Shown here piece by piece: positions 3 to 5,462 of a DNA stretch of 5,462 nucleotides. Below the pieces are notes generated by a model. That model searched no databases. It had not been told where the DNA came from and saw nothing but the letters and a program-made list of their open reading frames with translations. Made by a program: the position numbers and the translations under genes. How positions within the stretch are numbered: the first letter of the stretch is position 1; each line of letters opens with the position of its first letter. Source of the DNA: Leidyana gryllorum EB-2025a (Eukaryota; Protista; Apicomplexa); the NCBI GenBank assembly GCA_048772705.1, contig JBLWGC010000080.1:1-5462 (forward strand). Direction: 5' to 3'.

Positions 3-20
3 TGGTATGGCCGCAGCGAT
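3..20 (+). promoter_or_regulatory. Putative primer binding site (TGGTATGGCCGCAGCGAT)
   Basis: TGG follows a 2-nt spacer at the start of the internal region. TGGTAT matches the start of iMet-type PBSs (TGGTATCAGAGC in plants). The 5' LTR is not visible and the cognate tRNA is not identified. Confidence 0.6.
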
Positions 21-1029
21 TAGACCGGGGGATACGACCCCACCCACAGAGGAAGAAAAGAAGCTCGAAGAAAGAATGCGTAGAGTGGAACAGCACCTTG
101 AGGCAATAGCCAACTCCGCAAAGGCGACAGGAAGCCAGACCACCACGAAGGACAAAGCAAAAGACGGAAGCAACGAAGGGGGGAGGAACAAAGCCGACGC
201 CGCATTACGAAAGCTTACCCAGTTCAGCGGCGACTCAGAACCCACAGCATCGGACTGGCTCGACAGTTGTTCAGTCCGTTTCCTCTCACATGGAGTCACG
301 GATGATTATGCGAAGGTGCAAGCAGCTTGCTCACTGCTCACAGGATCGGCAGCCAGATGGCTCCTCAACAAACCTTCAATTATCAACCTCGCATGGCAGG
401 ACTTCACAACACGCCTATTAACACAATTCGATACACTCAAGACGATTCAAGATGATCTGAGCACATTGGCAACAATTAGCAAAACGGGCAGTATGCAGGA
501 GTACGTCCAAACCTTCCAGTCACTCTGCAGAGGCCTAAACCCAGCGGTAGAGGAACGAACGAAGGTCAATTTCTTCTTTAAAGGCCTGCCGAGCAATGAC
601 GCCCAAGCATTAGCACCGTTTGTCGCCGAGAGCAGCGACACTCTTTGTCTCAGAGCACTGCAGTACGACTCCATCATTGGCGGAACCAAACGGAAAGCCG
701 AAGAACACTGCTTCATGGTCCGAGAAAGGCGCACGGGAGGCTCAGTAGGCCGCAGATGCCGGTATTCGTACCAACAATGCATTGAAGAGAAGCGATGCTT
801 CAACTGCGGAGGAAGAGACCACACGGCATGGAAGTGCCGCTTCCCGCGCGATGATAGAACGCGAAACGATTACACGAATGCGAATCAGACAAGCCTGAAC
901 CACCCAGCACGCAAAGTCTTCGCCACAGGAATCCCGGATTTTCAATTCCCCCTAGGACAACCGGTGCAGGTCCTCGAGGGGGCGACCAACCAGATAGGCA
1001 CCCCACACTTACCGCAAAATGGCGCATAA
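7..1029 (+). CDS. gag: Gag polyprotein (capsid + nucleocapsid), 340 aa
   Basis: Retrotransposon capsid motifs FSG..A.DWL, LTGSAARW, W.DF...L..F, GSMQEYVQTF and FFKGL, plus a CX2CX4HX4C zinc knuckle. ATG7 is in good context (ggtATGg); an alternative ATG lies at 76. Confidence 0.93.
   Translation: MAAAIRPGDTTPPTEEEKKLEERMRRVEQHLEAIANSAKATGSQTTTKDKAKDGSNEGGRNKADAALRKLTQFSGDSEPTASDWLDSCSVRFLSHGVTDDYAKVQAACSLLTGSAARWLLNKPSIINLAWQDFTTRLLTQFDTLKTIQDDLSTLATISKTGSMQEYVQTFQSLCRGLNPAVEERTKVNFFFKGLPSNDAQALAPFVAESSDTLCLRALQYDSIIGGTKRKAEEHCFMVRERRTGGSVGRRCRYSYQQCIEEKRCFNCGGRDHTAWKCRFPRDDRTRNDYTNANQTSLNHPARKVFATGIPDFQFPLGQPVQVLEGATNQIGTPHLPQNGA
796..837 (+). other. Nucleocapsid zinc knuckle CFNCGGRDHTAWKC
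   Basis: Exact CX2CX4HX4C spacing in a basic, Arg-rich context. Confidence 0.95.
936..1002 (+). promoter_or_regulatory. -1 programmed ribosomal frameshift signal (slippery heptamer + stem-loop/pseudoknot)
   Basis: G GAT TTT at 936..942 is phased with gag codons and followed by a 5-nt spacer. The stem is CCCCCT-AGGAC (948..958) / GTCCT-cg-AGGGGG (970..982), and loop GGTGC (963..967) is complementary to GCACC (998..1002). The pol frame is -1 to gag and open from 858. Confidence 0.85.
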
Positions 1030-4000
1030 GTCACCCAGAGAACCCCAACAAATCGGTCGAAGCATGCATCCTTATAGACACGGGCGCCTCCATCGCCTGT
1101 GTCAATAAGGATACGGCACAGCTACTGAAGTTGCCACTGGATGGACAGACCTTCACCATCGAGTCGGTTCACGGCAAGCGAGCAGAACAGACAGTGAGAC
1201 TCAGATTGATAACCAGCGCGGGCCAAGCGATAGGAATACAAGCAGCAAGGATAGACCTCCTTCCGTACGACTTGATAATACCAACGGAGACCATAGTCCG
1301 ACTACAACTATGCATTGCCACGAACCAGGATCAGCGCTTGTGCATACTAGAACAGTATGTGGTTCCTGTGACCAAACAACAGGCACAATGGGGATCAGGA
1401 AGGGGCGAGGTACACCTATTACAAGCCGAAACTGACAAAATCGTACCGCCACCGATAGACTCACCGATAGACATACCACCCCGATACGCATACATTCTGA
1501 AAAAGAAGTTTCCTAATCTTACCACAAATACAACACGAATGCCACCATTCAGACCGGGAATAGATCACACAATACAACTCGATGAACCCAACGCACAGCC
1601 CTTCGTCGGACGACCATATAAAATTCCCCAGAAATACGTACCGGAGATGCGCAAACAACTGGTACAACTGGCCAGTGAAGGGAAGATCAGCCTTAGCACA
1701 TCGAGCTGGGCGTCACCGTGTATGTTCGTCCCCAAAAAGGACACAGCCACACCCAGGCTCGTATGCGACTACAGGCGTCTCAACGCAGTCACAGTCAAGC
1801 ATGCCTCAATAATACCCACCATTGATGATGCGCTCCAAGTATTAGCAGGGGCCAAATGGCTCTCCTCACTTGATCTGAAAGCCGGTTATCACCAAGTACG
1901 CATGGAGGAACAATCAAAGTCACTTACCGCATTCACGACGCCCTGGGGGCTATACCACTGGAATGTTATGCCAAATGGACTGATGAACGCACCTGCCACG
2001 TTCATGAGATTGATGAATCAAGTATTTGGGGACTTACTAGGCATTTCGGTCTATGTATACTTGGACGATGTCCTCATCTTCTCACCAACTGAAGCACAAC
2101 ACGTCAGAGACCTGGAAGCCGCTCTACAACGACTGTCAAACCACGACCTGATCATCCACCCTCGAAAGTCACATTTCTTCAAACAGTCGCTCACCTTCCT
2201 CGGTCACACGATTGGGGCAGACGGAATCAGACCAGTCCAAACCAAGATCGACAGCCTAACACAACTCGAGTACCCGAGGACGCTGAAAGAATTGCAAAGG
2301 ATAATGGGAATGATGAACTACTACCGACGTTTCATACCGAATTTCGCGGATGCAGCCCACCCACTGTACAAGTTAGGCAAAGGCTTGAAAGCGCCGAACG
2401 ACAAGACCTCTGAAACGAAGGAAGCGCATGAAGCATTGGAGGACCTCAAACGAGCCATACAGCGCGCTCCCTTACTGAAGTTTCCACATCCGGAAAGCAA
2501 AACACTTGTACTCGACACCGACGCCAGCAATCAAGCACTAGGAGCAGCCCTGCAACAAGAGGAAAATGGAGAATTGGTACCAATCGACTATATGTCACTT
2601 ACACTGAATGACGCACAATCCCGTTACCCGACGCACGAGAAGGAGCTACTAGCGCTGGTGACAGCTTGCAAACATTGGAGACACCTGCTGATTGGGCGGC
2701 GAATTAAAGCTCGAACGGATCACAAACCACTGATTTACCTTTTAAAGCAACCGCACCTATCCGATCGGCAAGCGAGGTGGCTAGTCACACTATCCGAGTT
2801 GGATATAGAGATAAATTATTTGCCAGGAGCCAAAAATTTTATCGCGGATCTATTAAGCCGACCACGAACGAAACCGGATAGACGGGAATGCAACGCCACC
2901 ACTGCAACGGGAACACCGGGAGCAAACGACAACGACCACAGTGGACTGACACAAGACGCAGACACCGCTGAGGAAGCACCGGTGGAAGGTCTAGAAGAAC
3001 GACTAAGGAGAGAATGGGCGCAGCGAAAAAGCGAAGCCGGTAAGTGCGGACAGATCCAATGGATACAAGAACTCCCCGTGACCGAGGACGGGTGCATCGA
3101 GGTACCGGCGGCAGCCGACATCATAAACGAGATTATTAAAGAGAATCATGACAGCAAGATGGCAGGCCATTTGGCCGCGGACAAGACCGCAGGGAGAATA
3201 AGAGCACTGTTCAACTGGAGAGGCCTGATGGCCGATGTCACCAAATACTGTCAAAGCTGCGAAACATGTCAGGTCGCAAAGAAACGCACCCACAAGCCGT
3301 ATGGCTTGTTGCACCCATTAGGGAACCCATCGCTGCCGTGGACCGAAGTCGGTATCGATTTCCTCGAGATGCCCAAGGATCCAGATAGCGGACACGACTA
3401 TTTAATGGTGGTCGTGGACCGATTGACCCGGCGTGTACGCCTCCTTGTCTGCAAGAAGACCATTACGGCCAGTGAAGCAGCACAACTATTCTTATCTAAC
3501 ATAGTGCAGGTACACGGAGTCCCTCGAAAGATAGCCTCAGACAGAGACCGACGCTTTTTGGCCGAAGTATGGACCGAACTGATGAAGTCACTGGGAGTCA
3601 ACTTAGCACGCAGCACCAGCTACCACCCACAGTCGAACGGATTAGTGGAGAGGGCGAATCGAACAATCGTACAGATAATCCGATGCGCTCTGAAAGCGCA
3701 CGGGGGAAACTGGGTAGCATACGTGGCTCCCACGGAAATGGCCTACAATGCAGCACCGCAGGCATCAACTCGCTGCACACCCCTGGAACTGGACACAGGG
3801 AGGACGACGTTTCTACCGTCAAACCTGACGGATATTGCATCCGGACGCAGCGTGACAGGCCGAGTGTATCTTCAGAAGTTACAAGAAGCAACGGATCGAC
3901 TACAGGCAGCTGCAGAGCAACAAAAACACCAAGCGGACAGGCGACGACAAGAGAAACACTTCAGAGTCGGGCAATTGGTCCTATTAGCGACTAAACACTT

Positions 4001-4457
4001 GGCACATGTACCCACCACGAAACTCACCAACCCGTACTGCGGTCCTTTCGAAATTCTTGAGCAAACGGGCGAAGACACTTACCACTTAGCGGTCCCACAG
4101 AGTTGGGGTATATACCCGAAGTTCCACACGAGCAGACTGGAACCATACCACCCTAGAAACACGACAGAAACACGATCAGCAACCACCAACGAACAATCAG
4201 CCTTAGACATCAGAACGGAACATGAAGAGGCAACCCAACCACAACTGTATATAATGAAAGAGATTATTGGCTGGAGAGAAACGAGCAATGGACTAGAGTA
4301 CAAAGTGACATGGGTGGGGTACAACGACCAAACGTGGGAACCAGCAAAGCATGTGACAGACGCTGATGGACACGACCTCATCGAAGCCTTCATGAAGAAA
4401 TGGAACGCAAGATACCCGAAGAACCCGTTCCAAATCCCAGAAGGGGGAGGGATGTAG
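936..4457 (+). CDS. pol: Pol polyprotein (protease, reverse transcriptase, RNase H, integrase, chromodomain), expressed as Gag-Pol
   Basis: The frame is open 858..4457. The ORF-track start at 1131 (TTG) is downstream of the protease active site LIDTGAS (1071..1091), so the real coding region begins upstream, at the frameshift. Confidence 0.95.
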   Translation, partial: GFSIPPRTTGAGPRGGDQPDRHPTLTAKWRISHPENPNKSVEACILIDTGASIACVNKDTAQLLKLPLDGQTFTIESVHGKRAEQTVRLRLITSAGQAIGIQAARIDLLPYDLIIPTETIVRLQLCIATNQDQRLCILEQYVVPVTKQQAQWGSGRGEVHLLQAETDKIVPPPIDSPIDIPPRYAYILKKKFPNLTTNTTRMPPFRPGIDHTIQLDEPNAQPFVGRPYKIPQKYVPEMRKQLVQLASEGKISLSTSSWASPCMFVPKKDTATPRLVCDYRRLNAVTVKHASIIPTIDDALQVLAGAKWLSSLDLKAGYHQVRMEEQSKSLTAFTTPWGLYHWNVMPNGLMNAPATFMRLMNQVFGDLLGISVYVYLDDVLIFSPTEAQHVRDLEAALQRLSNHDLIIHPRKSHFFKQSLTFLGHTIGADGIRPVQTKIDSLTQLEYPRTLKELQRIMGMMNYYRRFIPNFADAAHPLYKLGKGLKAPNDKTSETKEAHEALEDLKRAIQRAPLLKFPHPESKTLVLDTDASNQALGAALQQEENGELVPIDYMSLTLNDAQSRYPTHEKELLALVTACKHWRHLLIGRRIKARTDHKPLIYLLKQPHLSDRQARWLVTLSELDIEINYLPGAKNFIADLLSRPRTKPDRRECNATTATGTPGANDNDHSGLTQDADTAEEAPVEGLEERLRREWAQRKSEAGKCGQIQWIQELPVTEDGCIEVPAAADIINEIIKENHDSKMAGHLAADKTAGRIRALFNWRGLMADVTKYCQSCETCQVAKKRTHKPYGLLHPLGNPSLPWTEVGIDFLEMPKDPDSGHDYLMVVVDRLTRRVRLLVCKKTITASEAAQLFLSNIVQVHGVPRKIASDRDRRFLAEVWTELMKSLGVNLARSTSYHPQSNGLVERANRTIVQIIRCALKAHGGNWVAYVAPTEMAYNAAPQASTRCTPLELDTGRTTFLPSNLTDIASGRSVTGRVYLQKLQEATDRLQAAAEQQKHQADRRRQEKHFRVGQLVLLATKHLAHVPTTKLTNPYCGPFEILEQTGEDTYHLAVPQSWGIYPKFHTSRLEPYHPRNTTETRSATTNEQSALDIRTEHEEATQPQLYIMKEIIGWRETSNGLEYKVTWVGYNDQTWEPAKHVTDADGHDLIEAFMKKWNARYPKNPFQIPEGGGM
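1062..1350 (+). other. Aspartic protease (retropepsin) domain; boundaries approximate
   Basis: ACILIDTGASIACV with catalytic DTG at 1077..1085, flap-like IESVHG, and YDLII. Confidence 0.88.
1560..2250 (+). other. Reverse transcriptase core domain; boundaries approximate
   Basis: Motifs WASPCMFVPKKD, RLVCDYRRLN, LDLKAGYHQ, TAFTTPWGLY, MPNGLMNAPATF, YLDD (2058..2069) and FLGH. Confidence 0.97.
2505..2862 (+). other. RNase H domain (Ty3-type)
   Basis: Motifs LDTDAS, EKELLA, RTDHKPL, RQARW and NFIADLLSR. Confidence 0.95.
3120..4152 (+). other. Integrase (HHCC zinc finger, DD35E core, GPY/F module)
   Basis: H-X6-H-X29-C-X2-C at 3147..3269. D at 3357, D at 3540 and E at 3648 (35-residue spacing). 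GPF at 4041..4049. Confidence 0.96.
4248..4403 (+). other. C-terminal chromodomain (group I-like)
   Basis: YIMKEIIGWRETSNGLEYKVTWVGYNDQTWEPAKHV matches Y.ve.I.......eYlVkWkGy....TWEP. All three aromatic-cage positions (Y, W, Y) are present. Confidence 0.92.
4439..4452 (+). promoter_or_regulatory. Polypurine tract AGAAGGGGGAGGGA
   Basis: 14 consecutive purines immediately before TGTAG. Confidence 0.92.
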
Positions 4458-4509
4458 TAACCTACGGAGGAACCAAGCCACCTTGAGTACACTTTTTAGT
4501 TGCATGACA

Positions 4510-4605
4510 CTGTCTAGCCAGAGCTAGCCCAGCTAAGAACAAACCTGCGTCTCTGTGTCTCGGTGCCGGCCGGGACCGGCACGGAGACACGGGAACACAC
4601 ACTTA
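4510..4605 (+). repeat. Left arm of diverged inverted repeat in the LTR (two-hairpin module)
   Basis: CTAGC-caga-GCTAG (4514..4527), then hairpin GTGTCTC-g-GTGCCGG-ccggga-CCGGCAC-g-GAGACAC (4555..4590), then AACACAC..ACTTA. Confidence 0.75.
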
Positions 4606-4656
4606 GGAGACCAGGCCTTGACAACCGATGGAACTTCGCGGTCGCCATTTACCCGT

Positions 4657-4728
4657 TTACATAGGGTACGCGGTTTTCACGGTTCGTTCGTTGAGTGCTC
4701 TATAGTCGCAGACGAGGCGAGGGGTCGT
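4657..4728 (-). pseudogene. Short reverse-transcriptase remnant TTPRLVCDYRALNERTVKTAYPM*
   Basis: Manual translation of the minus strand, in the +1 frame relative to the antisense Gag ORF. 14/17 aa are identical to the element's own RT segment TPRLVCDYRRLNAVTVK (1749..1799). Confidence 0.85.
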
Positions 4729-5254
4729 CAGTTGTGGATCGGGGAGCGAATTCCTTCAAGAAGGAGGACTGGAAGTTGTCCCAGCTTTGGTCGGGTAAGT
4801 CGGGTAAGGTCAGGGCCCACTGTGCGGCTGAGCCGTGGAGGTAAGAGCATGCCCACGCTGCCCGGTGGTCGTCTGGGGTGTGGCGTGTCCTGAATCGAAG
4901 AGATATGGCGTCAAGCCACTCTTGAGCTTCCTTGCGACGTCGGCCGTCGAAGGTAGGCATGTTCTTCAGCGGATCTTGTCCGTCCATGAAGATGGCATCC
5001 CTGGCCGGAGGTGGCTGCGGACTCGTGGGGTGCACCGTCGGCTGGGAAGTCGCCGCTGCGCCCGATCGGAGCAAGGTGAGTATTTCAAGCATAGCGTTAT
5101 TCAGTAGATCTAGGTTGGTTGAGCTTTCTAGGTGAGTGGTGGCCAAGGATTCGGAGGAAGAGGACGTCGGTTGTTTGGTGGCTTGGGTGGTTTCTAACGA
5201 CGCACTGCTACCATTTTCAGCCCCGCGGGCTTCACTGTTCTTTCTAGGAGGCAT
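4700..5254 (-). CDS. Antisense truncated Gag-like protein (capsid N-terminal domain only), 184 aa, inside the LTR
   Basis: ATG at 5254 in accATGc context (the track start at 5311 is GTG). Residues 95-169 align with Gag residues 66-141 at 27/76 identity with one gap (F.G.....A..WLD..S.RF, DD, ACS.L.GSAA.W.L..P, W..F....L..F). Strand composition flips relative to gag-pol. Confidence 0.85.
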   Translation of the reverse strand: MPPRKNSEARGAENGSSASLETTQATKQPTSSSSESLATTHLESSTNLDLLNNAMLEILTLLRSGAAATSQPTVHPTSPQPPPARDAIFMDGQDPLKNMPTFDGRRRKEAQEWLDAISLRFRTRHTPDDHRAAWACSYLHGSAAQWALTLPDLPDQSWDNFQSSFLKEFAPRSTTDDPSPRLRL

Positions 5255-5300
5255 GGTTGATCTCGACGGTAATTCTGGTTCGCGGCACGCAACGAAAAGG

Positions 5301-5384
5301 TAAGTACACACGTGTGTTGTTGTGTCTCCGGCCGGCCGGCCCGGGTCGAGACACGCAATTTGCCGGATTGGCTCCGGCCAACAG
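5301..5384 (-). repeat. Right arm of diverged inverted repeat in the LTR (two-hairpin module; candidate antisense promoter/leader)
   Basis: On the minus strand: TTGGC-cgga-GCCAA(T), then GTGTCTC...GAGACAC (5322..5354), then AACACAC..ACTTA, in the same order as the left arm. It contains CCAAT (minus strand, 5367..5371). Confidence 0.75.
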
Positions 5385-5462
5385 GTTACAGACTTCTGGG
5401 AGGGTTTCCTACCTGGTACGCAGTAGTCGGCCGCCCCGCTGAGTGCCGGTGCCGGGGCTACA

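Follow-up and report, generated by a model that had tools for sequence, protein, structure and literature searches.

A Ty3/Gypsy retrotransposon adjoining an internally deleted copy of a second family, probably by nested insertion

Two retrotransposons in opposite orientation

The stretch of DNA that we analyzed (the window) is 5,462 bp long and is the whole of contig C80, from a eukaryotic assembly of 15.5 Mb in 237 contigs. C80 is a short contig that contains only repeats. Two Ty3/Gypsy chromodomain retrotransposons, which we call A and B, lie in it in opposite orientation. We compared natural copies throughout.

Element A is on the plus strand. Its gag (7..1029) is an open reading frame (ORF) of 340 amino acids that is open to the start of the contig and that matches the Pfam families Retrotrans_gag (E = 1.2e-9) and Ty3_capsid (E = 3.1e-9). 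Its pol (1131..4457) contains, by ORF and Pfam analysis, RT, RNase H, integrase, an SH3_Tf2-1 domain and a chromodomain. There is no further copy of A's pol at above 70% nucleotide identity in the assembly. From the sequence, we read a polypurine tract, GAAGGGGGAGGGA (4440..4452), which is placed like the purine runs ahead of the TGTAG or TGTTAG starts of LTRs in B and in relatives on contigs C26 and C201. It is followed by A's 3' LTR (4453..4661). Of the LTRs, primer-binding site (PBS), polypurine tract and target-site duplication that could be expected for A, just the polypurine tract and the 3' LTR are present in the assembly.

What is left of element B is on the minus strand. Its 5' LTR (5215..5462) is missing about the first 40 nt at the contig end and is 99-100% identical to four other B LTRs. 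The PBS, TGGTAGCAGTGCG (5201..5213), lies one base past the end of the LTR and is the same as the PBS of relatives. The boundary between the LTR and the internal sequence, as well as the full LTR length of 288 bp, were taken from a comparison of the two LTRs of a B copy on C201. Next is an ORF for a truncated Gag of 184 amino acids plus a TAG stop (4700..5254), which we identified from the list of ORFs, from Pfam and from the comparison with B. Its ATG (5254) is inside the B LTR, 40 nt ahead of the LTR's end. The truncated Gag matches Ty3_capsid and Retrotrans_gag in Pfam and is 35% identical to A's Gag over 83 amino acids (E = 7e-15). The remnant finishes with a fragment of RT, TPRLVCDYRALNERTVKTAYPM (4660..4725), which corresponds to residues 230-251 of B's pol and ends at the terminus of A's LTR. 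In protein records, we found no exact product identical to the truncated Gag or to A's Gag, and neither Rfam nor tRNA scans gave a match in the window or around B.

A and B are Ty3/Gypsy (Metaviridae) chromodomain LTR retrotransposons. In each of them, the order of Pfam domains in pol is RVT_1, RT_RNaseH, Integrase_H2C2, rve and SH3_Tf2-1, and both Ty3_capsid and Retrotrans_gag are found in A's Gag and in the full-length Gag of B. The C-terminal chromodomain of B scores 34.6 bits, which is above the cut-off of 25.1 bits, while A's scores 23.3 bits, which is slightly under the cut-off, and aligns with the chromodomain of B. There was no Pfam match for a protease; a D-T-G protease motif can be read 5' of RT in B.

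The last five bases of the window (5458-5462, TGTAG on the minus strand) differ from the B LTR, which has CGCAG there and then five further bases. Contigs C80 and C222 both stop less than 40 nt into a B 5' LTR, and it seems that the assembler broke at the border of the repeat.

The antisense sequence belongs to family B

The sequence-only reading had noticed an RT motif on the minus strand, and 4657-4740 does translate to DPQLTTPRLVCDYRALNERTVKTAYPM*. Its comparison with A's own RT also holds: between 4675-4725 on the minus strand and 1749-1799, 14 of 17 amino acids are identical, as are 34 of 51 nucleotides, and the codons differ at 9 of the 14 residues in common. To find the donor family, we searched the assembly with positions 4458-5462 of the window. 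The gag and RT pieces occur together at two other places, which are full-length copies of B (C201:76504-81685 and C222:7352-12507) that are 99-100% identical to the pieces in the window. In other words, a related family with contiguous gag and RT that match both pieces does exist.

The LTR and gag piece (4720-5457) matches C201 76549-77286 (positions 5287-4550 of locus L021) at 99.6% identity and C222 11747-12488 at 98.9% identity. For the RT piece, 4660-4728 matches the RT of the full-length element at C201 78533-78601 (L021 6602-6534) at 98.6% identity (E = 3e-29), and 4672-4728 matches C222 10440-10496 at 98.2% identity. If we consider just 4660-4725, then the identity to L021 6537-6602 (C201:78536-78601) is 100%. 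These matches for the RT fragment are far above chance. In the C201 and C222 copies alike, the gag piece comes first and the RT piece follows it on the same strand, at a distance of about 1.25 kb.

A duplication of A's own RT is ruled out by the nucleotide identities (34/51 to A, as against 100% to family B). The source is a related but distinct family, as had been proposed: the pol of B is 44% identical to that of A at the amino acid level, and at the DNA level, A and B are similar only in patches (69-75% nucleotide identity).

The B copy on C201 (L021 4505-9685) is complete. It has two identical 288-bp LTRs, a polypurine tract, a PBS that begins with TGGTAGCAG, and a 5-bp target duplication (GAGAC). 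Full-length B encodes a Gag of 352 amino acids and a Pol of 1,213 amino acids with a chromodomain. The zinc knuckle of B's Gag (Pfam E = 6.8e-4) scores 20.1 bits, slightly under the cut-off of 20.8 bits. A search of a protein atlas with B's pol found only generic RT clusters from mixed eukaryotic taxa.

The B remnant in C80 is a third copy. It has a private AA at 5320-5321 where the four other copies of the B LTR have GG, and among its other variants, one is shared with just the C222 copy and two with just the C201 copy. Because of these private bases and the mixed pattern of variants, the remnant cannot be made up of reads from the C201 or C222 copies. It is also very young: only two of its roughly 800 bases are private.

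We made a few other observations about the full-length copies. On C201, B is inserted (with the GAGAC duplication) in a high-copy tandem repeat, whose flanking parts are L021 4300-4504 and 9686-9750 (C201:76299-76503 and 81685-81749). A piece of this repeat of 127-130 bp recurs on many contigs at 99-100% identity, including along C43:195759-204177, where it returns about every 1,365 bp. The repeat has no match in Rfam or in tRNA scans. The C222 copy (C222:11747-12507, L003 1493-2261) has four single-base insertions relative to C201 and C80, in the LTR and in gag. These could be either early decay or errors in the assembly consensus.

The 3' end of element A

A's 3' LTR is 209 bp (TGTAG...GTTTACA, 4453..4661). 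TGTAG, at 4453, is directly after the polypurine tract, GTTTACA is at 4655-4661, and the ends form a terminal inverted repeat (TGTA...TACA). We compared these termini to the paired LTRs of relatives. The relatives' LTRs end with GATTACA, ACTTACA or GCTTACA, with a single base between this end and the PBS, and those that we delimited by their pairing measure 188, 288 and at least 296 bp. More broadly, we counted TACA-N-TGGTAGCAG 64 times across the genome, versus 0-1 times for a control pattern. There is no second copy of either end of A's LTR in the assembly, and A's 5' LTR is likewise absent. The length of 209 bp comes from the termini and the relatives, not from a pairing of A's own two LTRs. 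A point against it is that, in an alignment of the conserved core of these LTRs, the LTRs of the nearest relatives extend past the point equivalent to A's 4661.

The identity to B's RT begins at 4660-4662, which is to say at the GTTTACA end of A's LTR, and the sequence from there onward is 100% identical to B's RT. (Bases 4660-4661, CA, are compatible with both the end of A's LTR and with B.) Given the GTTTACA terminus and the RT sequence of B from that point, we place A's LTR at 4453-4661. Such an exact start of B's sequence at the terminus of A's LTR is what an integration leaves behind.

A deletion of 1,255 bp between gag and RT

Compared to its parent family, the B copy in C80 lacks an internal segment. 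The sequence-only reading had proposed a deletion of roughly 1.3 kb; the deletion is real, and mapping the junction gives its size as 1,255 bp. The switch from gag to RT is also real, but the interval that had been given for it (4723-4745) was too broad: gag runs to 4720 and RT starts from 4725. In a three-way, base-by-base comparison, the junction is a 6-nt microhomology, ACCCCT (4720..4725, minus strand), which occurs twice in the parent (L021 5282-5287 and 6537-6542) and once in the window. Over 4720-4728, the gag side and the RT side of the parent agree at 8 of 9 positions.

The lost segment held residues 179-352 of Gag, where the zinc knuckle and the remainder of the capsid lie, together with the gag-pol overlap, the protease and residues 1-229 of pol. 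The truncated Gag is therefore made of residues 1-178 of B's Gag, through a P codon that is common to both sides of the junction, and then SPRLRL from the RT sequence. Since 1,255 is 1 modulo 3 and the pol frame differs from the gag frame, translation enters the RT piece out of frame. This out-of-frame sequence supplies the end of the protein (...TTDDPSPRLRL) and the TAG stop at 4700-4702, just as had been noticed from the sequence.

At a random junction, the chance of a microhomology of 6 nt or more is about 0.0013. At about 0.13% by chance, the microhomology implies that the deletion was guided by homology. In contrast, splice dinucleotides are absent: across the 7 possible placements of the cut, the missing segment never starts with GT or GC and never ends with AG. 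This excludes a retrocopy of a spliced transcript as the origin of the deletion, as there is no GT..AG or GC..AG at any placement. The junction was not found elsewhere in the genome (it occurs once), and a 31-mer that spans it was not found in metagenome contigs.

Two mechanisms would fit the deletion equally well. First, RT might have switched templates between the two ACCCCT sites during reverse transcription of the B copy. Deletion at direct repeats by template switching reportedly occurs in both retroviruses and retrotransposons. A jump of the cDNA between these short identical stretches would remove exactly 1,255 nt, and it would predict that this copy of B was born deleted. Second, the segment might have been lost later, by microhomology-mediated (illegitimate) recombination or by replication slippage. 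As summarized in PMC1940013 (citing Devos et al. 2002, Genome Res 12:1075), LTR retrotransposons are eroded by illegitimate recombination, and patches of microhomology mark the borders of the deletions. The deletion in C80 resembles those described in that summary in that a short direct repeat (6 nt here) flanks the lost segment in the parent and one copy of the repeat is left. It differs from them in that the undeleted parent is present at 99-100% identity. Because the undeleted family is so similar, the deletion can be mapped to the base and must be very recent. It is a clear illustration of deletion at a microhomology, with the undeleted parent still in the genome.

Element A probably integrated into the deleted copy of B

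We propose that A integrated into an older and internally deleted copy of B, and we put the probability of this at roughly 80%. The B copy would have been present first, and A would then have integrated into its RT region, in the opposite orientation. On this side of A, the minus strand still has most of B's 5' LTR and its PBS, codons 1-178 of Gag, and RT sequence of 66 nt. The 1,255 bp from after codon 178 of Gag up to RT residue 230 were lost at the 6-nt direct repeat, with the out-of-frame RT piece supplying the tail and the stop codon of the truncated Gag. If so, then the arrangement is a young and ordinary insertion of one transposon into another, plus a microhomology deletion.

The sequence-only reading had instead called the antisense sequence a cassette, which could be taken to belong to A or to lie inside A's LTR. 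The evidence does not support this: A's LTR ends at 4661 and B's RT starts from the next base, and the far end of the supposed cassette is B's own PBS and 5' LTR, in antisense. Since B's RT adjoins the terminus of A, and B's LTR and PBS are present, the sequence from 4662 onward is flanking DNA and not a captured module.

A stronger form of the same idea is that 4453-5462 is a single composite LTR of A that holds an antisense gag-RT cassette, captured from a sister family, as a working gene, which might for instance control copy number. The antisense ORF is intact, the two ends of this region have inverted similarity to each other, and there is no second copy of A by which a composite LTR could be excluded directly. 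But the far end is the LTR and PBS of B, with 99-100% identity to full-length B LTRs, and A has a canonical LTR terminus at 4661. The inverted similarity (4553-4600 versus 5312-5352) is a GC-rich dyad core that is found in the LTRs of at least eight Gypsy families, so it is common to many families; one copy is in A's LTR, another is in B's LTR, and they face each other. Also, an LTR of 1 kb would be at odds with those of relatives (188-296 bp), and nowhere else is the B segment joined to an A-like element. We consider a composite LTR to be very improbable. For annotation, this means that A and B, which are merged into one element if a 1-kb "composite LTR" is assumed, should be separated, and that exact borders can be given for A's LTR, B's LTR and the PBS, along with a deletion junction at base resolution. 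It also removes the basis for interpreting the window as an antisense gene within an LTR, a quasi-symmetric LTR or a bidirectional LTR.

Another concern is that one or both of the joints (A/B and gag/RT) might be artefacts of a chimeric assembly or library. C80 is an orphan contig, short and made up of repeats alone, and both of its ends are at LTR borders. A's LTR is in the assembly only once, and no assembled sequence represents the other half of the interrupted B copy. Specifically, a third copy of the part of B that lies past L021 6602 is absent from the assembly. (A partial copy, C222:4009-6601, begins 490 bp past L021 6602 and adjoins a different element.) The single-base indels in the C222 copy also hint that the consensus is imperfect. 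On the other hand, the A/B joint is precisely at an LTR terminus, which would not be expected for a random chimera; the 6-nt overlap at the gag/RT joint is too short to mislead an assembler; and the remnant of B has private bases and a pattern of variants that fits neither of the full-length copies. An artefact is unlikely, yet we would not rate it as low as the composite LTR.

Returning to the insertion of A into B, nested insertions of LTR retrotransposons have reportedly been described from a large plant genome (SanMiguel et al. 1996, Science 274:765, in the reference list of PMC1940013). As in those nests, the host element in C80 is interrupted exactly at the terminus of the inserted LTR. 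The differences are that just one flank is assembled here, without the other half of the split host or a target duplication, and that C80 is from a small eukaryotic assembly (15.5 Mb). Nested insertion into repeat-rich DNA is expected for chromodomain Gypsy elements. If our interpretation is correct, then at least two chromodomain Gypsy families have been active very recently in a small eukaryotic genome and have inserted into each other.

We also noticed a second nested case, on C222 (L022 3760-4010). There, the LTR and PBS of another Gypsy element, in the opposite orientation and on the minus strand (ending ...GGGGTCTACA), abut the RT/RNase H region of B exactly, at 4009/4010, which is position 2795 of our B query. 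This leaves the 3' half of B (C222:4009-6601), which is 100% identical to the C201 copy.

The truncated Gag

The truncated Gag ORF is probably a by-product of the deletion rather than a gene. The alternative is that the host or the element has kept it and expresses it as a trans-dominant inhibitor of the assembly of family B particles. What makes this conceivable is that the 184-amino-acid ORF is intact, lies behind B's own LTR, and is nearly unchanged from its parent. Furthermore, restriction factors derived from Gag are known: p22 and p18 of Ty1 (PMC4599808, PMC4551931) and the domesticated Gag of Ty1' (PMC10951436). The likeness to these is that a shortened Gag frame could in principle disturb the assembly of particles. 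However, p22 is the C-terminal half of the Ty1 Gag (PMC4599808), while the ORF in C80 is predicted to encode the N-terminal half, was made by a deletion, and is present in a single copy. Intact reading frames are expected from youth alone, so, because this copy of B is very young, the intactness of the truncated Gag is uninformative. As evidence of selection for a restriction factor, one would look for conserved or orthologous copies of the truncated Gag, and these were not found in the assembly; with a single young copy, a signal of conservation is impossible. Overall, we give an inhibitory role very little credence, about as little as the composite LTR. If it did have such a role, the ORF would be a restriction factor observed just as it arose.

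Other features of the LTRs

A's LTR contains a conserved core (at about 4492-4602) that we aligned across eight families. This core is 71-88% conserved in at least eight families that are otherwise diverged, with relatives on C6, C25, C62, C96, C108, C116 and C215. Its sequence is TTTTTAGTTGCAT... and then the GC-rich dyad, GTGTCTC..GCCGGCCGG..GGAGACAC. Such conservation is unusually strong for LTR sequence. The core may be a common promoter or a signal for packaging or dimerisation.

There is an ATG within A's LTR, at 4628, which is 34 nt ahead of the LTR's end (MELRGRHLPVY...). It would be in phase with A's gag, provided that the first base of the contig is the final base of the LTR. (The contig opens with G, while A's 3' LTR closes with A, which is a point against our interpretation.) Given the similar location of the Gag start in B, translation of Gag in both the A and B families seems to start within the LTR and to read through the PBS. 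The presumed PBS region of A, at 3-25 of the window, is TGGTATGGCCGCAGCG, which is unlike the PBS that occurs 64 times in the genome but resembles it with 5 extra bases.
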